Assembly: GCA_013239625.1 (NCBI GenBank)
Contig: MU053334.1
Span: forward strand, 248,001-312,000
Length of the DNA: 64,000 nucleotides
Reading direction: 5' to 3'
DNA from: Lama guanicoe
Lineage: Eukaryota
Shown here one piece after another: positions 1,620 through 61,560 of the stretch; positions within the stretch are counted from its first letter, which is position 1, and the number at the start of each line of letters is the position of its first letter. Made by a program: the position numbers and the translations under genes. The notes beneath the pieces were generated by a model. It did not search any database, had not been told where the DNA came from, and worked only from the letters and a program-made list of their open reading frames with translations.

Positions 1620-4881
<3,262 letters not shown>

Positions 4882-8006: not shown

Positions 8007-10115
<2,109 letters not shown>

Positions 10116-20100: not shown

Positions 20101-20579
20101 GAGGGGCTGGTGCAAAATGAAAGTCAGAGCCCCTTGGTCAAAAATTATGGAGAATTTCAAGACAGTGGCTGCAGAGCATCAAAACCAGGAAGGGGTCCTG
20201 TGTGACTGCACATGTCATGTGCCAGTGAAGCCAGCCATGCTCCCTTGGCTGGGTGAAGCAGGGTGCCGCCAGGGTTGAGCGCTGAGTGGGCCTGGGGTGG
20301 GCCGCCAGCTTTGCATGGGGTCTGTCTCCCAGGCTGACCCCTGTCCCGTGTGAGCTGCGCAAGCTTCGGGGTCCTGGCGCAGCCCTTGTCCAGCACAGGG
20401 TGGGCTGCTCGGAGAGTGTGCACCCGCTGTGTGTTCCGGCTGTAGTCCCCGAGCTCCCTCATCTGGGCCAGAGGTCTGGGCCGGAGCTGCCCCAAGTCGC
20501 CACCAGACGGCAACTGGGTCACCCCTCATTTGCATAATGCTTTGCATTTTGCGTGGGTCAGAGGTCTCTGAGCCCAGCT

Positions 20580-21570
20580 TGGGGGCAAGGACGGGGACGT
20601 CGTGCCCGGGACTGAGCGCTGCCTGGGGCCCCTGCCCTCAGCCCCCAGCCCCCGCCATCGCTTCCCGGGCTGGGCGGGCAGGGGAAGTGGAAGGCCGAGG
20701 GGCGCCGGCGCGGGCGGAGGGCCGGGGGCGGGGGCGCCGTCCCGGGGCTGCGATTGGCCCGCGCAGGGCGGCGCGGTCGGAGTTGCGAGGCGGCGCGGCG
20801 AGGAGTGGCCGGGGCGGGGGTCTTCGCGGGGGCGNNNNNNNNNNNNNNNNNNNNNNNNNGGGCAGGTGTCCGGGGCCCGCCGCGGGTCCGAGAGGGGCGG
20901 CGCGCCCGGAGCCACCGCGGCCCGGGGCGCGGAGCCTGGGGCGGCCCCGGCGGCCCCGCGCGATGCGCCGCTCAAGCACAGACGAGTCCACGTACCGGCG
21001 CAGCCCGTCGCCGCCGGGCAAGGAGCCGGGCTTCGCGCGCGGCGGCGCCTTCTTCGGCCTGCACGCCAATCCCGGCCCCAAGGCGGCCCAGGCGCGCTAC
21101 ACGTCGCCCAAGGGTAACAAGTACGTGGTCTTCTACCTGGACCTCTCCTTCATCTTCCTCCTAGAGCTGAAGCGCTGCAGCATGGCGCGCGGCTGCCTCC
21201 AGGGCGTCAAGTACCTCATGTTCGCCTTCAACCTGCTCTTCTGGGTGAGTGGCCGCGGGATGTCGGGGATCCGGGGTCGCCGCTTCGGCAGGGGTACGTG
21301 GGGGACACCCGGGACGTGGACTGGGAGGCGTGCCTGGGGGTCGCCGCTCCCTCTGCGGGCCAGGGCTGGATCGGCCCCTGGGGAGGGTTTCCGGTACCTC
21401 TGGGGTCCGCCCCGGCCTCTGCACTCTGGGCGGCCGCCCCGCATCCTCTCCCTGCTCCTCTCTTCCTGAGACCAGGCGCGTCCCGCGCCTGCCGCAGGAT
21501 CGCCTCAGGCCCCGCGCCTGGCCTCTGCCGGGTTTAAGTCCCTGTCGGTGCGCGGGGCCGCGGGTGCCTT
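20580..21570 (+). promoter_or_regulatory. internal CpG island / alternative promoter of TSPAN4
   Basis: CpG-dense, with reverse CCAAT (attgg 20753-20757) and GC boxes (ggggcgggg near 20725 and 20811). A 25-N gap lies at 20835-20859. The island spans the first coding exon. Confidence 0.7.
20963..21181 (+). CDS. TSPAN4: putative 73-aa N-terminal extension of TSPAN4 (long isoform, 311 aa)
   Basis: In-frame ATG at 20963 with no stop before the canonical ATG at 21182. 68 of 73 codons end in G/C. Peptide MRRSSTDESTYRRSPSPPGKEPGFARGGAFFGLHANPGPKAAQARYTSPKGNKYVVFYLDLSFIFLLELKRCS. Confidence 0.6.
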
Positions 21571-24500
21571 CCCTCCGTCCCCTTCCTCCCTCTTCGTGGC
21601 TGCAGTGCTCGTCTCTTCTTGCCTCCCCTCCTCAGCAGACTGGCCTACCGGGCCCCAGGGACCACACTTAGGGAGGGGCTGAGGAGGGGAGCGCGGTGGG
21701 GCGGGAGAGGAGGGTGTGTGGGTGATTGCGCTGGTTGGGCCCGAGCCTGAGCAGGATGGTGGGCCAGCAGGAGAGGGGCCTGGCCTGTGCTGCCTCATCC
21801 AACGTGGGGGGGGCATCCATAACTTTTGCAGAGTTGGGTTGGGTTTGCTCAGATGAGGTGCCTGTGTTCAGGGTCAGAGGTGTTGGCGCTGCAGGGTTGT
21901 CCCCTCCCTGCAAGATTGAGAACAGAGGGTCCACCCGGTCCCGTAAGGGCAGAGAGGGTGCTGGGCTGGGGCTGGGGCAGGTGTCACACTTGGCTCCACT
22001 GGTCGTGCTGGGAGAAGGTTGGTGGAGACATGATGCCAAGGTCACACTCCCTGCTCAGTTGTTAATTCGTGATCGGACCCTCCTTCCACAACTGGGAGTA
22101 AGGGGGTGTGGCTTTAGCTCCTGCCTGGGCTCTGGGCCCCAGAAGAAGGCTGTCATTTGTAAGCTCATTTGCATGAGGTCCAGTTAAGGCCAAATGCTCA
22201 GAAAGCCCGTCTGCCTTTCTGCACCTCCCTTCCATCCTGGGCGCTGGCTTTCCTCTCCTCAGTTTGTTAAGGGGGGGGTGTCCCTGGGAGGGGTGGCCAG
22301 CCTGGGAGGCTCCTGCCCTGATGCCCGTCTCCAGAAGGGGTCACCCGCAGGTTTTCTTCTCTGCAGGGGGCTCCTGGGAGGGGCAGGCCCCAGGCCAGAG
22401 TGGAGGGGTACGCGGGAGGCCAAGAGCCAGCAGCAGAGGCGGTGTGCAGCTGGAGCTCTGCCCAGGCATGAGAAGAGGGGACTGTCTTCTCTTGGTGGGG
22501 GACGTTGACCAAACGTAGGGGCACCAGTGTGGTTAGCACTGAGCGGCTGGCAGGGTAAGCATGCCCTTGGCAGTGTGACAGGAGAAGGCTGCAGGTGACA
22601 GTGTGACCAGAGCTGGCAGCCATGGGTGTGAGGGAGGTGAGCCGTGTTTGTGGCAGAGTGACAGGGGAATGGGCTGAGGGTGTGAGGGATGGTCCTACGT
22701 GGTGGCAGCACCTGCTTCTCCCCTTCCCTGCCCTCCTCAGTGACCTCTGCTTGCATGGAGGAGAAGGGGTCCCTCAACGTGGCCTGTGCTCTGAGAGAAG
22801 CCCACCCCAATGGGCTGTCTTTGCCCTGTGCACCCGCAGGAGCCCCCTGCCAGCTGCAGGGTGGACACGCTCCACTGATCCCCATTGTGGATGCTGTCCT
22901 CAGCCTAGGGAAGAAAAGTCAGGAAGCCCTCTGGGACTCTCCCCTGAGGAGAAAATCCAATTCTCTTTCATTATCCAATTAAATTTCCCAGCCAAGCCAA
23001 CCGGGCCCCTGTACCAGCCTTGGCCCCTCCACGCCCCAGCTTCATGTCAGGGGAGTGCAGAGGCCTGCCAGTCAGAAAGTGGACCCATGGGAGATGTGCT
23101 GAGGCCAGGGGTGGGGAGAATGGCTGCAGGCTGGGCGCGACACTCACCCTGCTTTGTCCCTGTGCAGGTGCCAGCTGAGCCCTTCCTGCTGGGGACCAAG
23201 GCTGCAGGCAACAGGGTGGCGGCTAGAACATGCCTTCCCAGGGACGCTGGCTCCTTTGCTGCCTGGGGGCACTGGGCCCCCACAGGAGTGGTAGTTTTTG
23301 CCCCCAACTCCATTTCTCCCCGAGAGTGTCCTGCCTCAGCCTCCCCACTGTGTTTTTTAAGTAACACCGTTATTGAAATTTATGTGGTATTTATTCACAT
23401 ACCACACAATTAACCCATTTGAAATGTGCAGTTCAGTGCTATTCACAGAGTTGTGCAACCATCACCAAAATAAATTTTAGGACATTTGATTCGAGTCATG
23501 AAAGGTTCACCATGGGCTCCGAGGTGGTGGTGGGGGAGCCAGTGGGCTGGAGACCCTCTCCCCCTCACCTGTGTCAGTCCTGACTCCACCCTCCAGGGAT
23601 GGGCCGGCTCTGGCCATAATTGACTCCTCGTGCTCTGTTGGACAGGTCTCCCTGGGGGCTCCTGGCTGGAGTCCTGAGGGCAGGGCTGAGGCCTCCAGCC
23701 TTGGGTCCCAGTGGGGCCGGGAAATGTCAGTACCCATCTGTCCCAGGGTTGCTCTGCCCGTTCCTGGGTGGCCGGTGGGTCATGGACCCATCTCGGGAGG
23801 AACCAGGCCTGCTTGTTGTCACCAGTGCTTGGAGCTGGGGTGCCCTGAGAAGGGGAGCCAGGAGGGCGCAGGCGGGCGGCAGGGTCACTGGGGGAGGAGA
23901 GGCCCAGAGGGGCCGGCGCTGGGGTCTCTCCGAGCTCAGAGTGGCCAACTCCCAGAACTGCACCTGCCCTCCTGCAGCGGACGGGCCCTCACAGGCAAGG
24001 GGCAGCCCCCCTGGGGGTGCAGCCTCCCTTCTCTGAGGTGTGCACAGGGGGTCAGCAGCTTAGGGCCAGGGTCCCTGGGGCAGGGTGTCTCCTGGGAGCC
24101 CCATGCTGGTGATTAGGGCTCTGTGCGGGGCCCAGGAGTGAGGGCCAGGGGCTGAGCAGCCCCTGGGAAGCGGCCGGGGTTGGGCAGAGGAGGGAGGCGC
24201 CTCCCTGCCCCTTCCTTGCTCTGGGTCAGGTGTTCAGGGCTCCCCCAGGGACAGTTACCGCAGCCCCAGATGTAGTCTGGTTGGTCTGGGGATGGTCCTG
24301 GGTGGAGGCAAGGCTGGGTTCAGAAACGGTGAGGGTACTTCTGGGGCTCTCCTGTTGCCAGGTGCCATGCCCAGCCCTAGCCATGCAGCCCAGGTCCTCC
24401 TGAATTTGGATGAGCCAGGGTGGGTGGGCAGCTGTGAAGGGAGGGGGGTCCCTGACCACCCTGGTCCAGGCAGGGGTCAGGATGCCACAGGACAGCTGTT

Positions 24501-27500
24501 CTGCATGAGTTCTGTCCTTGGGGCCAGCAGCTGGCTGACTGGACAGATGGGGACTCTGGGGCCTGGGGATGTAACCCCTCTGTGGTGGCAGCACTGGGAC
24601 CCCTCCCCTGTTCCCCTCCCACCGTGCCCAGCCGTTGCCCTGCTGCAGTGCGGATGGCAGGGAAACAGTCCATTTCCCAATAATCAACTCCTATTAGGAG
24701 GTTGGTGGCTCCCTGGATGGGTTGGGGGTGGCAGGGGCTGGTCAGGGGGCTGTGGGCTCCGGCTGGCTCTGGTGCAGTCCTGGGTGGCCGTGTTTGGCCT
24801 GTCCACCCAGTGACCCAGACGGGCTCCGTGGGGCCCCTGTGTCAACCTGCTGGGAGGGAGGGTGAGGGGAGAGTCATGGCCTCTGTATGGGCAGAACCAC
24901 CTTCCAGACACAAAGCGGAGGCAGAGAGAGCTGCAGGCAGGGTGGGAGTTCTGTCTGGGGCAGAGAGGGGACAGGAAGCAGTGCAGAGGCCAGAAGGCCT
25001 GAGTGGGCAGAGGGGGCCGGGGTCCCAGCCCCACCCCCCACCCTAGGCCCTGTCCCCCGTTCAGTTCCCCAGCCCCTGTGCAGGGCAGACCTGGTTTCTG
25101 GTGCAGGGGACACATTCTGCCGTGCATGAGCTTCGTGACCATGGGCCCCCTCCCTGCTCCCGTGCCTGCTCTTGGCTGGGAGTGGGGTGTTGCCCGCCGT
25201 GCCCAGCCCCACCCTGAGGCTGCGTTGGCTGCCGGGTGCTGGGCTGCTGGACACAAGCTTGGCCCCTGTGGGCACGCAGCCCTCCACCCCCTTGCAAGGA
25301 CATGGCCAGCTGCCCGGCCATCTGCCACACTGAGCCATGTGGCCGGAGGGGCAGCAGTAGAGCACCGGCTGGCATCCACCTGCCATGGGCCTGGAGGGGG
25401 ACAGCATCACTAGCCTAGTGGTCCCCACCTGCCCTAGGCCAACCTGAAAAATACCTGGGCAAGGAAAGAGATGTCAGGAAGTGAGGAACACGCGCCAGGT
25501 GCTGGGCTGGGGCTGGGGGCAGGCGAGGGCGGTGGAGGACAGGGTGTGCCCTCAAGGTGTGTGCCAGGGAGACAGGCCACAGCTGACTGTGGGACTAGGG
25601 TGGGAGACCCCAGTGAGGGGGCTGGCTCCTCTCCCAGGCTGTCGTGGGGTCGAGGTCTTCTTCTTGGCCCCACCTGGGCTTCTGTCTGGCCCAGGCAGTG
25701 ATGAGTGGGGCTGGGGAGGTGCAGGGTAGGCATCATCAGGGTGGGGTGGGACCCCGGCCCCCCGGCCCCCCACTGCTGATGCCCTGGCCACCTGTCCTGG
25801 GAGAGACCTCGACCCTGCCTGTCCTGCGTTGACGTGCCGTCTAACGTGGCCCACTTTCTCCTGTACTTGGAGGCTGTAATTTTCTTGCCAAAAGGTTTTA
25901 AAAGCTGCGTACACAGAAACGTCTTCAAAACTACGGATAATTGTGTTAACCATGTGCGCATCTCAGCACGTCTGTGTGGATGTGCCTGAAAGTGGCGGGG
26001 CCTGGGGGGTTTGGGGCATGTCTGTGACGTGTGTCCGTGTGGTGGGTGACACTGTGTGATGCTTAAGGGCGTCTGACAGCCTGGGCTGTGTGCCGCGTCC
26101 CAGTGTGTCATGGCACGCACCTGGGTGACAGCCAGTGGATGTCTCTCCTGCCACTTCGGGGTGGAGGTGAGTGTGTTTCCTGGAGTGTTAAATAAAGAAA
26201 TGTTTCCACCAGGGCTGGGGGTGGGGCCCGGCCCCTCCAGGCCCCCCGACCCCTACAGCCACTCCGCCCGCAGTGTCCTCCCTGTGCACTTCCGTGCATC
26301 CCCACGGGGCGAGGGAGCTCAGAGGGGCTCACTTTCCTGCTGAAAGGAGCCATCCGCCTCTGTCCTTGAAGGCAGAGCCAGATGGGCAGGCTGTTGGGGT
26401 TTTAAGTAACAGTTCTCCCCGCTGCACCAGCATCTTCCCGCTGCTCAGGGGCAGCCCCACCCACCCCACCGTGGCCCCAGCCTAGATGTAACCTGGAGAT
26501 GTAACCCTCCCAGGATGGCTCCCAGCGCCAGCCTTTCCCAGCATCCTTGGAGATCCCATGAGACCTGGGACAGCCCCTTGGCTCCTGGTTTCTCACCTGC
26601 AGGTTGGTGGGGAGAGGGCTGAATAAGCCAGCGCCTGTCCCAGCCTCTTTTATGCCCCATGGTCCACACCCCCTGGGCGGACATGGGGTGTCCAGAGGTA
26701 CTGGTGGCCCAGCCTTGCTCCCTCTTGGCGGCCATGCCTGCAGTCAGCACTGTGGACAGCGCTGTCCCTGGCACCACGGGTGGGGCCTGCCCCACAGGGG
26801 GTAACGCCACCCCACAGGTGGGGGCACACACGTCTCCTGGCAGCACACACGTGCCCTGTCCTGGGGCTGTGCCAAGCCCAGCTCTGGTGAGGACGGACCC
26901 TCCTGGCACATCGCCTGCTGTCAGTGCCCTGGCTGGCCCCTGGCTTTCACACTCTGGCACACACCAGGCACACGTGCCCCCCACGCCCTTCACGGACCCG
27001 CAGGCCCCTACCCTGCTTTGCCCCGGGGAGGGGCTCAGACGGGCAGGATGAACAGGCCAGGGCAGGAGCCTCCGTGGGGGGCCTGGCGCAGCCTCAGCCA
27101 GCAGCAGCCAGAACAGGTGTGGCGTATAATTTTTAGACAGAAGCTCTCGTGTTTTGTGGACAGCACAAGGAGGGATAAGGTGGGGGACGGAGAGGAGCTG
27201 AGCTAACTGGCCCCCCATGGGGTAGGTGTGGGCATTCTAGCCTGGAGCTCTCCTGTCCACCTCAGCCAGCCCTGGGCAAGGCCGAGAGGGACCTCGGACA
27301 CCAGCAGCAGACTTGGGCCAGAGCCCCTGGTGCCTGCCCACACCCCTGGGATCCTGAGGCTGCTCCTGCTCTTGGGCTGGGAGCTGTACCGCCCCCACCC
27401 CGTAACTGCAGTCTTCCGCCAGACTGGCTTAATGCATGTGTGCTCCCCAGGGACTTAGTGAGAGTGGAGCAGCGGCCCCCACCCCTACCCCTGCAGCCAG

Positions 27501-30500
27501 GGCTGAACTGCTGGTGTGGGCAGGGCGAGTGAGTACATGTGCGGAGGGAGAAGCCCTCCTTAGGCAGGGGTTTCAGGGCCCATCAGGCCTGCCTAAGTCA
27601 TGGGGTATCTACCAGGGTCCAGGCCAGCCTCAAGGAGGCTTCTGGGCCCCGGGGGTGCAGGGCCCCATGTCCTGTCCAGTCGGCGAGTGGTGTGGAGCCC
27701 CCAGGGCTGCCTGGCCTCCCCCGAGCCTGTCAGCCATCCGCCTCCAGCTGGTCTCTCAAAGCCTCGGTTGCCTCAGGACCCAGAACCGGCTAGCATTTGT
27801 AGGGAGCTGCCTGCCCCTAGCCTGTGCCCTGGACACCTTCTCCCGTTTTATCTCGGGATGGCTCAGAGACCTCAGAGTCCTGGGGGGCCAGAGCCGCAGC
27901 CCCTCAGCTGCCCTGGCTCCACCCTGCTCCCCACCCCTAGGAGGTGGGCATCCCTTCCTCACGGAAGGCCGAGAGCCCGCCTTGGATTCACCACCGCCTG
28001 GCCTTCTCCCCTTCCTCATTTTAATTGATTTTTGTAGTAACAAGCAATTATGGAGCTCAATAAAAGCTGCAGTGGTGAAGGAGAGGTGGTGGCAAGGGCA
28101 CGTGGGGGCTGCACTTCAGAAGGGATGGTTAGGGGAGGGCGTGTGGGGGCCCAGCCGGGGTGACGGGACAAGACGGGGAGTTCGGGGGGGCCGCCCGGGA
28201 CCTGGCGGGACGCTCACCTGCTACTCTGCCGTCCCTCTCTCCCCGCCTGGGTCCCAGCTGGGAGGCTGCGGCATCCTGGGCGTTGGCATCTGGCTGGCCG
28301 CCACGCAGGGGAACTTCGCCACCCTGTCCTCCTCCTTCCCGTCCCTGTCGGCCGCCAACCTGCTCATTGTCACCGGCACCTTTGTGATGGCCATTGGCTT
28401 TGTGGGCTGCATCGGGGCCATCAAGGAGAACAGATGCCTCCTGCTCACTGTGAGTCAGGGCGGGGCGCTGGGGCCGGGCCGGGCGGGGCCCCCCTTCACA
28501 GGACACAGACACACAGGTGCCCGCACACCCACACGCATGCCAGGCAGGGCCCCTTCAGCCGGTACCGGGCCCATGCTCTCTGACACCACCTCTCCCATGA
28601 CCCCTCCCGGCTCCTGCCCCTGCCCTCTTGGCTCCCCAGGACCCTCTGTTCAGAGCTCCCAGCCCTCGCCTCAGCTTCGGAGGTGGATTTACAGGCAGGA
28701 TGTTTCCATCCTGGGGAACATCAATCACAGGAGAAGGATAAAGGACCCCTGGGCCAGGCTATGCCTATTAGTATGCCTGGCAGCGGCCTCTGGCGGCTGA
28801 CTCAAGCCTGAAATCACCTGCTTCATCTGGGGCCTCTGTCTGAGGAGCCCTTGCTGGGGAGGGGCCTCCCAGAGGGTGCGTCCCCTGTCTGTGCAGCTAC
28901 CCAACGTGTCCAGTATATGCCCCAGATGTTCCCTTCAGGGCGGCGGGCAGGGGTGGAGCTGAGGCCCCCAACCCTGACCTTTCCCACGGGGTGGCTTGGA
29001 GGTCAGAGGCTAGTGCTCCACTGCTCAGCCCGGCCAGGGCACCTGGGCTGAGGTCAAGGCTGTGACTCGAGGTACCACCACCCAGTGGGCCACTGTGCGG
29101 TCACAGGTGGGGGCTTCTCTAGCTTGTTCCTGCCTGAGTGGGCAGTGGCCACCCCTGGCTGTCCTGAGGGATGGGACCTGGGGGTTGGGGGTCACTGCAG
29201 TCAGACCTTGGGCATCGCCGCACCTGCCCGCCCAGCACAAGGACACGGGTCCGGGGCACACGTGTGTGCTCGAAGACGTGAGGCTGTGCCCAGAGGCCGG
29301 GCAAGACCCGACCGCCCCGGCACAGAGACTGGAGGGCTCCGAGGGAGGTGGGCAGCACGAGTGGGGCCCGCAGGCCTGGCCTGGGGGCTCGGGCTGAGGC
29401 CCGCGCCCCACCCTCTGGGGGCAGCTGGGGGCTGGGTCGCTGAGGCCGCCGGGTCCTCGCCCGCAGTTCTCCGTGCTGCTGCTGCTGGTGTTCCTGCTGG
29501 AGGCCACCGTCGCCATCCTCTTCTTCGCCTACACCGACAAGGTGCGGCTCCCCCACTGCGGGTGTGGGGCTCCATCCTCACCACCACGAGGGCCACGGTG
29601 CACAGGCGACGAGGGGGCAGGGGCCCTGGCACGGCGTGGACCACAAGGGGACCCGGCCGTGCATCTAACTTCAACCGCAACCACTGGAGGCCGGGCCTGG
29701 AGGGAAACGCTGGGGCCCTGGAGGGCAGAGCAGTGTGAGCTCCCAGGCGGCCCCCAGGCTCGGCCCCCTGCTCCTGCTGACTTCAGCTGTGTATCAGCTG
29801 GATGGGGAAAATCTATCCCCCATGGATTTATTTCATGACTTACACCAGTGAGGGCTCATCTACGATATTCTGAGTTACACACTCCAGGACTGTTTTTCTT
29901 GCTCGTCTGTCTTAGTTTTGGTGGCGAGGAGCGCTCACTTGCTCCTGAGTGGAGGTGCACTGAAGGGGGTGCACCTCCTCTCTGGGGAGTCCCTGCCCCA
30001 GCCCTGGACTCGGCCATTTCTCCAAGGAGCCTGGTTCCTTTCCTGGAGGATGGTCTTAGGAACGAGGACCTCGGCCCTCTTGGCCGACAGCGGGGAGACG
30101 AGCGGGTCCTGACGGGTGTGGGCAGACGCAGCTGAGGGTTTCTGTACTGTCTCCCTCTGAACATAACTGACGGAGGTCGTGCTGATGTGTCTGACTCGAA
30201 CCCCGGGCTCAGCACCACGGGTGGCCCAGGGAGACCAAGGGGCAAAGGCCTGAGCCTGCTGAGGGCTTCTGGGAGGGGGTGACTCCAGGAAGGGGGACAG
30301 AAGGCACGGGGTGGGGGCCTGGGCAGAGGTGGGGTCTGGACGAGGTAGGTGGAGCTGGCTGCAGGGTGGCCCCGCTGTCCTGCAGATCGACAGGTACGCG
30401 CAGCGGGACCTGAAGAGGGGCCTGCACCTATACGGCACCCCGGGCAACGTGGGCCTCACCAACGCCTGGAGCATCATCCAGACAGACGTGAGTCGGGGCG

Positions 30501-31345
30501 TGGCAGTGCCGGGCGTGGGCGGTGCCAGGGCGCGGCCAGGGGACAGTCCCAGCCCGCACTTCTTCCGCAGTTCCGCTGCTGCGGGGTCTCCAACTACACC
30601 GACTGGTTCGAGGTCTACAACGCCACGCGCGTGCCTGACTCCTGCTGTTTGGAGTTCAGCGAGAGCTGCGGGCTGCACGCGCCCGGCACCTGGTGGAAAG
30701 CGGTGAGGCTGTGCCCTTCCCCCGGCTCTGGCCCCGGGGACTTGAGGGTGGAGCGCCGGCCTCGCAGCCCCCTGTGACGCCTGCTTTTCCTCCAGCCCTG
30801 TTACGAGACGGTGAAGATGTGGCTCCAGGAGAACCTGCTGGCCGTGGGTGTCTTCGGACTGTGCACAGCTCTGGTGCAGGTAGGGGGTGGGGCTGCCACC
30901 AGAACCGCTGGACCCACCCCAGCCCCCGCCTTCTTCCCCATGGCAAGTCCTGAATGTGGCAGCATCAGGGAAACCCATCTCCGGGGTGCAGACGGGGGTT
31001 GCAGCCAGAGCGGGCGGACAGCACCAAAGGTGCTGATTGCAGTTGGACTAACGGGCAGAGAGCAGCTGCTGGGGCCAGGCCTGGCACCCCTGGGCCCTGA
31101 CGCCACCCGTGGAGGCCAGGGTGGGTGGCCAAACCTGAGGGGAAGGGGTCTGGGCTGAGCCCTAGGGTTACAGGCCATCCAGGCAATGGGGTGGGGTCAG
31201 GGTGCCTACTGCGGCAGGACCTCTCTGGGCTGTCATCCCTGGAGCAGCCCTGCCCAGCTGCCACCTGTCCCCACAGATCCTGGGGCTGACCTTCGCCATG
31301 ACCATGTACTGCCAGGTGGTGAAGGCGGACACCTACCGTGCGTAG
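21182..31345 (+). CDS. TSPAN4: tetraspanin-4 (NAG-2), 238 aa, 7 coding exons
   Basis: Exons 21182-21244, 28258-28449, 29467-29541, 30386-30487, 30571-30702, 30796-30879, 31277-31345, all phase 0; sum 717 nt. Begins MARGCLQGVKYLMFAFNLLFW, contains FRCCGVSNYTDW...VPDSCC and ends KADTYRA*. Confidence 0.97.
23352..23490 (-). mobile_element. old LINE-1 3' end fragment (L1M-type)
   Basis: AT-rich island (tttattcacataccacacaattaacccatttgaaatgtgcagttcagtg...cagagttgtgcaaccatcacca) that resembles the antisense L1MA/MB 3' UTR as recalled. Confidence 0.7.
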
Positions 31346-31769
31346 GCTGCGTGCTGCCTGCCATCCCTGCTTCGCTGCCAAAGGATGTTGCCCACTGGGG
31401 AGAGGACCACGTCCCCACCTGCCTCTCCCGTTGCAGGACTTCTCACCAGCTTGGGCATCAGGAGGGGAGGAGCAGGCAGCCAGACCCCCCCCAGGACTCC
31501 TAGCCAGGCCTGTGAACGTGATGCTGGATGGGGTGGCCGAGTCCTGGCCTGGGGCTGGGGTCGGGAGGGGCTTCTGGCAGTTTTTACACCCAAGTATTCA
31601 CCAGAGTAGTGTTTTCCCCAACAAACCCTGTCCAGGGCAGGCGGTTGGGGCCATGCACGGGTTGGGGTGGGAGGTGAGGGCTGACCGCTGGTCCTGGTGC
31701 TCGAGGCGGGGCCACAGCCCCGCCATCCACATTCCACAGCGGGGCCAGGGTAGGCTCTGGGTGCATCTT

Positions 31770-31775
31770 AATAAA
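31770..31775 (+). terminator. TSPAN4 polyadenylation signal AATAAA (second candidate at 32118-32123)
   Basis: First canonical hexamer, about 425 nt after the stop codon. Confidence 0.7.
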
Positions 31776-34250
31776 GTATGTGGGCAGCAGCCCCCGACCC
31801 GTGTCTGTCACTGCCCAGACCCCTGTTACGGGCCTGGTGCCTGGAGTGGGGGTCCTGGACGTGGGTGGGCCTGGGGAGCTGCCCGGGCTGGACGGACGGG
31901 GGCTCCTGTGCCCGCAGAGGACGGCAGGAAAACCTTAGTGAGAGGAATCCAAGCAGTCAGAGAGGAGCCCTGAGCCTCCCTGACATCCCACTCCCCCGCC
32001 TTGGGGCCTCGCCCTCCCCCAGGGCTGTCCTCACCGAAGGGAGCTCAGCTCCATCTTTCCTGTAACTTCCTGTTCCTAGGGACTTGGCCCTGTGAGTGCT
32101 CCTCTCAAGATTTTGCAAATAAAGTAGGCTGTCGGGAGCGGAGCGGTCGTCACAGCCCAGTTAGAGAAGTGGGTACGCTACGTCAAACCACCTCAGGCGG
32201 GATGAGGCTTCCTGAGGTCAGGACTGAGGGGGGTGCAGAGGCCAATAGGTGTGGGGGCCCCTCCCAGGGGCCTCACTAGCTGTGGGGCATCTGACCCCCA
32301 AAACTGCACCCATAATCTGTTTCCAGCCCCTACTCCTGCTCGCCCCGCGGCCCCACCCGCTCGGTCACCCCGACCCCCTCTGCATCACTGCTGTTGTGCA
32401 GCGACCTGCCTGGCGATGCCCAGCCAAGTACCAACCAAGGCACCACCCAGCCCACCAGGACACCTGGCCCCTCCTGGCTCTTGGCCTCCTGTTGGCATCA
32501 CACTCATCCCACTGACTCCACCTGTCCTTGTTCCACGGAAGCCACCAGAGGTCACACAGGGACTTAGGCTGACGTGGGCCCTCAATCCAGCCCTGACTCA
32601 GCTCCCCTCAGCCCCTGAGCTGCCTTGGTCCCGCTGGGATGTGCAGGGCCTGTTTCCTCCAGGGCCAGCCCTGCTGCCTGCTGCGATGTGTCCTGGCCCA
32701 GGCTCCCCCTTTGCTGGTCCTCCATGTCTTCCAAACCCCAGGCCGGGGAGCCTCACGTGCGCCTGGCACGCCTCTCGCTCCATGTCCACTGACACTGACT
32801 CACGCTGTGGCCCCACTGCTGACTTTCCTCCCCCGTGTCCCCACTCCTGAGCAGACCTCCAGACACACCAGGTCCCAGCACTCACTCCCAGTGCAATGGC
32901 CTCTGCGCTCCCCTCCCACTCGGAGGGAACCAGCCCATGCTTTCAGCCCCGCCCTCTAGCCCACAGCCGGTGGGGGGGTGCCAAGGTGGGGTCTTGGGGA
33001 GATGGGCTGTGGCCCCACGTGCCAGTCGGCACACCAGCACACAGACCCCCATGCACACACAGGAACGCACACACCCACTCACAGCAGCTTCTGAGAGCCC
33101 CACTTCACCCCTCCTTCCATTCAAGCCCAACCCCACCTCACACGCCAGATCTGGGGGGCCAGGCCTGTCTCCCAGAACCAACAGGCCACCCTACCCAACC
33201 CCAGCAGCAGGCCTAGGTGGGGACAGCCCTGGGGGGCCGCTGTGTGGGTCGGGAGAGGGCCCCATCGGACGTACCAGCCCGTGTACTCATCTGAAGCCCA
33301 CACCGGCAGAAGCTTGGTGCCCAGGTGGGCTGCCTTCCCAGACAGACTGGTTTCTGCTGTGGAGCTGCGAGGTCAGACTTCCCGTCCACACCACGCGAGC
33401 AGCTCCTCGGGGCAACTCCTGAGGGCCCGGCCAGTCCTCGACCCCAGGGACAGCTGTGTGTCCCCTAAAGCCCTCCTCAAATTACGCCCCGTAGCAGCAG
33501 TGACTGTGGCCCCACGTGCTTCAGCTGTGCCCGAGCTCACGCCCGGCATCTGAGCAGCGAGCCCACAGGCGCAGTCAGCATGACCACAGGGGTTCATCTG
33601 CTGGGAACCAGTGGGCTCACTGAGGTTCCTCACTGGGGAGGGGTGAGGGCAGGCTCAGCTGCCCTTTGGCTCCAGGCAATCCCAGATTTTTTCCCAGGGT
33701 GTCCCACTGGGAGCATGGCTGCACCTGTGGGCAGCGGGCCTGCAGCAAGCTGTCACTCCACAGCGACCACACAGCTCATGGGCACCAATGGGCTCCCAGA
33801 GGGCCCGGGTCCCCTGGGGCAGAGCTGGCCCCCACGCACTCTACTTGTGGGGCCTGTCAGGCTCCTCTGCAGGCAGGCCAAGCCAGAGCCTGCAATGGGA
33901 GGCGGGCCCCTCTGCACTGCCCTGAGGAGATGCCCAAAGTCGGAGAGATGTGAACAGAGGCCTGGAGTCCTGGTGTGGGGGACCCTGGGATTGTCCTGGA
34001 GTCTCCAAACTCACAGCAAACTGCAGGCCAGTGGGACCCCCGGCCACCCTATGTGGTGGGGGCTCTGCTTCCTGCCCTCACCTGGCCGGGACTGCCCGCT
34101 CCACGTCACTGAAGGGGAGGCTGGGTCCCAGGACCTCTGTCCCCACCCGATGCCCACAGCATACAGAGCATGGAGAATGGAGAAGAGTCTGTATTTTGCA
34201 CACCAGTCCTTCTGTCTCTTGGGAAAGCGCAGGTCGGCTCCAGACTGGGC

Positions 34251-53479: not shown

Positions 53480-54720
53480 GAGGAAGCCGCCCCGAGGCAG
53501 CCCTGGTGGGCGGTGAGCGGCCGCCGGGCGACCCCAGCTCCACAGGCGGCGGAAGCGAGATGGGATGGAGGTCGGGGTCGGCCGCCCAACCGCGGTCCCC
53601 CGACTGCTGCGGGCTCATGCCTAGGAGCCCCTCCCCAGTGCGGAAGATCTGCAGCCTTCAGCGTCTGGGACTGAGGCGAAGAGGGAGTCAGCCTAGAGCG
53701 CCCCAAAGCGCATCGGGGTCACCCGCCCCCGCGCTGGCCCGCCCTGCCCGCAGCCACTCTCGCTGCCGCCCACACAGGCTCGCGCCTCCCGCTCCTCCCG
53801 CTGCCCACGCCTCGTCCTCTCGTGCGCACCCGCTGTCACACCGCCTCCCGTCCACGCCCGCCGCCCCTCCTGGCCGCACACGCAACCCCGCGCGCCCACT
53901 CCGCGGAGGGGAACTGAGGCCCTGGGAGCCGGGGAAGCAGGCGCCGGAACTCGGGGCGCGAACGCCACCCCGGCGGGCCGCCGCGGGGCTCACCTGCATG
54001 TCGCAGGGCTCACCTGCATGTCCCGGAGGGCCACCGGACCCCCCTCTCGCGTGGCCGGAAGACGCTCGCTAACGCCGCCGGAAGTCCCGCCCCAGGAGGC
54101 CCCCGCGCCGCCGCCGCGCACAGCACGCTGGGGGGGGGNNNNNNNNNNNNNNNNNNNNNNNNNNNNGGGGGGGGGTCCCGGCTACGGGCCGAGGGGCGGG
54201 GCCTGGAGGACAGAACCCGGGGGAGGATCGATCTCGGGGCGGAGCGAGGCCGAGGGGCGAGACCGGGCCGGGGCGGAGCGCTGGGCGGGGCGGGGCTGAC
54301 GCTGGGGGCGGGGCGAATCAGAGGCTCAGAGGGGCTGGGCCAGGGGCGGAGCCGACCCAGAGGAGGAGCCCGGCGGGGACTCGGCGGGGTCCAGACTCGG
54401 GCACCCGAACTGAGAGCCCGCGCGCGCCGACCCCGGCCTTCCGTGGGCCCTGGCCTCTGATGGGAACCAAACGCCCTCTCTCGAGAGCTGGCGCGGAGGT
54501 CTGGGTTCCAAGGGGCGCGCAGTCCCCTCTCCTCCCCAGCGCACGCTCTGTGGAAGGCCCGGCTCCGGGTGCGATGTCTGCGCTGCGACCACCTGGGTGA
54601 CCACCAGGGCGCGCCGCGGGCTCCAAGGCCTTTGCCCAGCCGGGCAGGGGGCCGAGGGGACCTCGCAGGACCGACCTCCCGCACTTCCACGTTCTCTCTT
54701 GGACCCAGGAATCGCCTCTC
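53480..54720 (-). promoter_or_regulatory. CHID1 CpG-island promoter and exon 1 (donors at 54014/54013 and 53994/53993)
   Basis: CpG-dense. ETS motif ccggaagt at 54078-54085 next to a GC box. CAG|GTGAG donors on the - strand. 28-N gap at 54139-54166. The exon-2 acceptor tctctctgcag| opens at 49989. Confidence 0.75.
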
Positions 54721-61504: not shown

Positions 61505-61560
61505 TGTCGAANNNNNNNNNNNNNNNNNNNNNNNNNNNNNNNNNNNNNNNNNNNNNNNNN

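Follow-up and report, generated by a model that had tools for sequence, protein, structure and literature searches.

We analysed a 64,000-nucleotide stretch of guanaco (Lama guanicoe) DNA, hereafter the window, that carries the tetraspanin gene TSPAN4 on its forward strand. CD151-like tetraspanin exons lie upstream on the same strand (8218-9805), and a CHID1-like C-terminal exon, ending in ...LDYFYDLL and a stop, lies downstream on the reverse strand from about 34350 onwards; the window matches CD151-TSPAN4-CHID1, the gene order of mammals. The canonical TSPAN4 start codon and the first 21 codons occupy 21182-21244 (A at -3, G at +4) and are followed by a donor GT at 21245-21246. We located the downstream exons by tblastn of the vole long isoform (P0118) against 21300-33000. 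On the forward strand, these are the next coding exon, with the rest of TM1, EC1 and TM2 (approximately 28258-28452); the exon with TM3 (29470-29544, start approximate); several exons with the large extracellular loop (CCG, PDSCC) and TM4 (approximately 30383-30888); and the last coding exon (31274-31339), which ends in ...ADTYRA and a stop, as does the camel model (P0105). The exons of the window encode the hallmarks of a tetraspanin (GGCGILGVGIW..., FRCCGVSNYTDW...PDSCC and ...ADTYRA), and PF00335 is recorded for homologues of the long isoform described below. Four masked runs of N interrupt the window, at 4060-4203, 20835-20859, 54139-54166 and 61512-61560.

An open frame ahead of the canonical start

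An ATG at 20963-20965 on the forward strand (G at -3, C at +4) is in frame with the canonical ATG at 21182 and opens a run of 73 codons, to 21181, without a stop; beyond that ATG it stays open over 21 canonical codons, as far as the donor. The two in-frame starts are 219 nt apart with no ATG between them, and the acceptor used by upstream exons sits in that interval. Upstream of 20963 the frame remains open as far as the run of N, and conservation begins at the ATG. The 73-codon N-terminal extension (20963-21181, forward strand), recognized by its periodicity, its homologues and its conservation, has a conserved serine-rich N-terminal block (residues 1-20) and, after a middle part that varies, a second conserved block that ends in a core motif and a cysteine.

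The first-pass annotation had described this stop-free frame and had ascribed coding-type periodicity to it, with 68 of 73 codons ending in G or C. Direct reading of the sequence bore out the frame, and our recount of the codons agreed exactly. The GC counts by codon position in 20963-21181 are 42/73, 39/73 and 68/73 (0.58, 0.53 and 0.93 for positions 1, 2 and 3), and the binomial tail for at least 68 of 73 at the GC content of the stretch itself is 2.5e-7. We scored periodicity as GC3 minus the mean of GC1 and GC2 in all 219-nt windows on both strands of the 64 kb. The extension ranks 104 of 125,326, and the maximum of the entire window falls within its cluster, exceeding every exon of TSPAN4 (~28.3-31.3 kb) and of CD151 (~8.2-9.8 kb). 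The open frame alone is weak evidence: at the local composition, the chance of a stop-free frame of 73 codons is ~0.24, and long open reading frames are also present in other frames of this region.

The open frame of the extension also contains the splice acceptor of the exon with the canonical ATG, with its pyrimidine tract and AG (21143-21164, forward strand). The last codons had been said to serve as polypyrimidine tract and acceptor as well as coding sequence, and the position of this element within the frame agrees. The AG is carried by a CTA codon, as read from the sequence. That this codon is fixed by the acceptor, also proposed earlier, is consistent with the DNA of two orthologous loci, one bird-like (L001) and one fish-like (L003), which are identical over CTC CTA G|AA CTG, as expected because the stretch serves both splicing and coding. 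In genomic DNA the frame of the extension passes over the canonical acceptor and runs directly into TM1, both in the window and in single-contig open reading frames of many animals, as well as at L001 and L003. Fusion with another gene was ruled out, since none of the species seen has the extension and TM1 in separate exons.

Immediately upstream, 20560-20962 on the forward strand is a CpG island (GC 0.83, CpG observed/expected 0.91) that is a candidate promoter and 5' leader for the long isoform. The reverse CCAAT box and GC boxes reported earlier are present, the former at 20753 and the latter as seven GGGCGG elements between 20672 and 20939 (at 20672, 20712, 20726, 20766, 20812, 20895 and 20939); a motif scan of 20560-20962 found no TATA and no ATG. 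The masked run at 20835-20859 interrupts the candidate promoter ~100 nt upstream of the long-isoform ATG, and that part of the leader is unreadable. Sequence words of 20860-21300 occur in 21 sequencing runs, and in two of these, recorded as RNA-Seq, 70-79% of the words sampled are present. The canonical exon makes up ~18% of 20860-21300 and cannot alone explain this share, which is weak evidence because the contigs may be pre-mRNA or DNA.

Distribution, age and conservation of the extension

We searched 1.84 billion cluster representatives by phmmer with 94 residues, comprising the 73 of the extension and 21 canonical ones. This returned 70 matches, 55 with E<=1e-10, and many span residues 1-94 in one piece. 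A word search with residues 1-94 of a whale long isoform gave 204 matches at E<=1e-5, which are named as isoforms of tetraspanin-4 or tetraspanin-9. Matches were found in cartilaginous fishes (catshark, skates and rays); in sturgeon, paddlefish, bichir, gar and many teleosts, including zebrafish tspan4a X1; in frogs, lizards, turtles and many birds, including chicken X2; and in mammals, among them koala, armadillo, rodents, carnivores, pangolin, bats, tree shrew, tenrec, cetartiodactyls and primates, the last (Saimiri, Nomascus and Macaca) as database proteins only. No named invertebrate protein was present among matches with E<=0.001. A Pfam scan found no family in the 94 residues, and a sequence search found no PDB match for the 73.

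All of the compared extensions have the same methionine and serine-rich block, begin with methionine wherever the N-terminus was found, vary in length by in-frame insertions and deletions only, and run unbroken into the canonical methionine and TM1. The first-pass annotation had named frameshifts, stops and loss of the ATG in orthologues as points to check: the indels are in frame and the start methionine is invariant in 37 of 37 aligned long isoforms, as seen by a protein search, which cannot return species with a broken frame, such that losses in some lineages are possible. Its central claim, that 20963-21181 genuinely encodes an N-terminally extended TSPAN4, is borne out by the presence of the same extension joined to TM1 across jawed vertebrates. 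It had also pointed, correctly, to a similar stretch ahead of the TSPAN9 ATG, and homologues are found in that paralogue. The extension is present in both TSPAN4 and TSPAN9 and is therefore older than their split; this distribution, taken from protein comparisons, shows it to date at least to the ancestor of jawed vertebrates, before the duplication. Separately, one Logan contig (P0055) encodes a diverged version of the extension, with the core ...VIVLYLDLSFLLLLE..., that leads into a tetraspanin TM1; it may represent a further paralogue or an early-branching vertebrate.

The isoform is not hidden, as had been supposed. RefSeq, Ensembl and UniProt models carry the extension in many vertebrates under names of the form tetraspanin-4 or tetraspanin-9 'isoform X…', and the sequence feature is already known as database models rather than being a discovery. 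One of them, Tetraspanin-4 isoform X6 of Camelus bactrianus (A0A9W3HIP8), agrees with the window at every one of the 94 residues and also matches it in later exons (IKENRCLLLT, ...ADTYRA). Predicted TSPAN4 long isoforms of Manis pentadactyla (X1), Microtus oregoni (X1), Gallus gallus (X2), Danio rerio (tspan4a X1) and Scyliorhinus canicula (tspan4a X2) agree with the window in start and blocks and likewise continue, unspliced and in frame, into the canonical methionine and TM1. The long isoforms of TSPAN9, a different gene, share this architecture (Rousettus aegyptiacus X1, 330 aa; Tupaia X1; Mus musculus X5; Mobula birostris X1, 329 aa): they have the Met-x-x-Ser-Ser start, the R-S-P-S block, K-Y-x-x-P-K-G and the core, followed by the cysteine and canonical methionine, whereas the middle of their extension is unrelated to that of TSPAN4 (22% identity) and lacks FRRYSS.

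We aligned 37 full-length long isoforms from both paralogues. Nineteen columns of the extension are invariant, including M1, S4, R13, S14 and S16, which form the M-x-x-S-S ... R-S-P-S block and are all present in the window. The best-conserved part of the long protein is the core motif, KYVVFYLDLSFIFLLE in the window (residues 53-68; 21119-21166, forward strand). In its consensus, KYVVFYLDLSFxFLLE, 12 of the 16 columns do not vary; the majority fraction is 0.97 there and 0.74 in the canonical 238-residue body. The core is followed by an invariant cysteine and then the canonical methionine, and residues 53-72 of the window carry the core through this cysteine. Between pangolin TSPAN4 and bat TSPAN9 the core is 94% identical and the body 54%.

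Orthologous DNA was compared between the bird-like locus L001 (L002 is the same DNA) and the fish-like locus L003, both from metagenome contigs. Differences at codon positions 1, 2 and 3 number 33, 20 and 55, as a count by codon position and not a dN/dS estimate; nine further metagenome loci (L004-L012) match the TM1 part only and stand outside this count. Over the 24-codon conserved block the numbers are 3, 1 and 11, and within the codons of the core motif only third positions have changed. At the protein level, birds, turtles and lizards have almost the same extension. Across camel, whales, cattle and deer, identity over the 94 residues is 98-100%, and the translated flanks in the same contig open reading frames, just 5' of the ATG and just 3' of the donor, diverge with insertions and deletions. 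These comparisons indicate that the extension encodes protein and that strong purifying selection acts on it, and conservation of such strength implies function.

Loss of the FRRYSS segment and of the canonical methionine

The TSPAN4 long forms in the databases are computed models; outside the cetartiodactyls most are ~20 residues longer than the form in the window and retain an FRRYSS segment. Comparison of extensions (P0114, P0118, P0128 and P0132) places the junction of an in-frame deletion of ~20 residues at 21047-21055 on the forward strand of the window. The deletion is common to camel, whales, cattle and deer and removes the piece from FRRYSS through a glycine-rich segment. FRRYSS is kept in the TSPAN4 of other placentals, a marsupial, birds, reptiles, a frog and sharks, and an RRYSS-type site that is conserved elsewhere in TSPAN4 has thus been deleted in this lineage, including in the window. 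The piece that was lost lies between GGPF...GGPF in other mammals, and slippage between these short repeats may have produced the deletion. The absence of FRRYSS is a lineage variant, and the window still belongs with the long isoforms of TSPAN4 and TSPAN9. A separate and larger reduction is seen in the armadillo (Dasypus novemcinctus tetraspanin-4 X1, P0126), the extension of which is short and diverged, with changes in the core as well, whether through relaxed constraint or because the model is poor.

A different change affects the canonical start. The methionine that begins the 238-residue protein is replaced by leucine in three rays (P0015, P0017 and P0154) and in gar (P0016 and P0153), and by valine in sawfish (P0151). 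In these fishes the canonical methionine is lost, and the upstream ATG is therefore the only start that gives an intact TM1.

A probable alternative first exon and its predicted tail

We consider it very probable that TSPAN4 has an alternative first exon with 20963-21181 as its coding part; the choice between a long and a short protein would depend on promoter and acceptor. Transcripts started in the CpG island (~20.6-20.96 kb) would run through the acceptor at 21164/21165 and retain the extension; the first AUG on them would be that at 20963, which adds 73 residues to give a protein of ~311 aa. Transcripts from upstream promoters would splice into 21165, start at 21182 and yield only the 238-aa form. 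With the weaker context at 20963 and no AUG between the two starts, some short protein may also be made from the long mRNA by leaky scanning.

Two alternatives deny that the stretch is selected as protein. The frame could be open by chance in GC-rich sequence of a CpG island or intron, never translated and periodic by accident. The modest improbability of 73 codons without a stop, the long open reading frames in other frames and the blank Pfam result for the 94 residues would all fit that reading; the G/C-ending third positions and the highest periodicity of the window do not, nor does a protein that has been kept from sharks to mammals and in a paralogue. Propagation of an annotation error through the databases could mimic such conservation, but open reading frames on independent Logan and ENA contigs argue against this. 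Cross-vertebrate protein conservation and periodicity together rule out a chance frame, to which we assign a negligible probability. Conservation might instead serve DNA or RNA, in the form of an acceptor, a branch site or a promoter-proximal or 5'-leader element. The last codons do double as pyrimidine tract and acceptor, are unchanged between the bird-like and fish-like loci, and sit with the rest of the stretch in a CpG-island promoter. Outside the acceptor, however, residues have been preserved through changes at third positions, both in the conserved block and overall; indels stay in frame, the start methionine does not vary among the 37 long isoforms, and rays, sawfish and gar have lost the canonical one. 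We regard constraint of this kind as highly improbable, and in its pure form it is ruled out by the third-position excess and the loss of the canonical methionine in those fishes.

It may also be asked whether the extension, coding in the ancestor, is now a decaying relic in the lineage of the window, with the deletion of ~20 residues reflecting relaxed constraint and the 238-aa form alone being of consequence. That the deletion is common to camel, whales, cattle and deer is compatible with decay, as is the odd downstream splicing in several models of these species. The deletion is in frame, however, and has left the periodicity intact, and the remaining 94 residues are nearly the same in camel, whales, bovids and deer next to flanks that have diverged with indels; we therefore find decay improbable. 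An alternative first exon that is translated and maintained remains our preferred reading.

The extension would form a cytoplasmic, largely disordered tail, rich in serine and proline, with conserved serine sites of basophilic, acidophilic and proline-directed type; the patterns are RRSS, SSTDES-type, R-S-P-S and S-P-K. The invariant hydrophobic 16-mer would follow, and then an extra juxtamembrane cysteine directly before TM1. The long isoform of pangolin was modelled with AlphaFold2 from the alignment of 37 sequences. Residues 1-81 were predicted as disordered (pLDDT 33-42), and a helix at 82-95, covering the latter half of the core plus the Lys-Arg after it (pLDDT ~50-60), was placed before TM1; confidence is low over the whole extension (pLDDT 33-60). 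Our reading of this model is a disordered, phosphorylatable tail that leads into a short interfacial helix, the cysteine and TM1. The 16-mer would most likely be a helix at the inner membrane surface, where it would alter how the tetraspanin is seated in, or recruited to, its microdomain. KYVVF within the core, pointed out earlier as a putative PP1-docking site, is nearly invariant and fits the RVxF pattern [RK]-x(0,1)-[VI]-{P}-[FW], which docks PP1 from accessible disordered stretches, but it runs on into the hydrophobic helix. Promoter use in the guanaco, leaky scanning, topology and phospho-regulation are all parts of the scheme that we infer. The database models are themselves predictions, and several cetartiodactyl models with the extension show aberrant downstream splicing.

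The 16-mer could instead be a true fifth transmembrane helix, which would place the serine-rich tail on the extracellular or luminal side. It consists of 16 mostly apolar residues between a Lys and a Lys-Arg and is predicted to be helical, but it is short for a membrane span (a helix of ~14 residues at pLDDT 50-60, in a model of low confidence) and includes an invariant Asp and Glu. The loop that follows is basic, and serine motifs of kinase type suit a cytoplasmic tail. In tetraspanins the loop just before TM1 is cytoplasmic. A fifth span thus seems unlikely to us, and we favour the helix at the inner membrane surface.

Canonical TSPAN4 has the same four-transmembrane body (21182-21244 and the exons at ~28.3-31.3 kb) and a cytoplasmic N-terminal tail of ~10 residues; the disordered tail, hydrophobic 16-mer and extra cysteine are all absent from it. 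This 238-aa protein is the form used in studies of migrasomes. As far as we found, work on TSPAN4 in both migrasomes and microdomains uses it, and full-text literature searches, including one with the core motif as a string, returned no paper on the long isoform. Caenorhabditis elegans TSP-21 (301 aa) and Drosophila Tsp5D are named as orthologues of TSPAN4/9/CD53 (PMC4433240). They belong to the same tetraspanin subgroup, and TSP-21 is longer than 238 aa.

A strongly conserved module of two tetraspanins thus appears to be unstudied. The natural deletion of FRRYSS in camels, whales and ruminants could help to map the function of the tail. More tentatively, and as a possibility that we hold to be rather doubtful as a whole, the long form may be ancestral for TSPAN4 and TSPAN9 in jawed vertebrates, with the 16-mer and a phospho-regulated tail acting as an unstudied control module, for example as an inner-leaflet wedge or docking site that tunes the assembly of microdomains or migrasomes. 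If this is true, work with the 238-aa form alone misses part of the biology.
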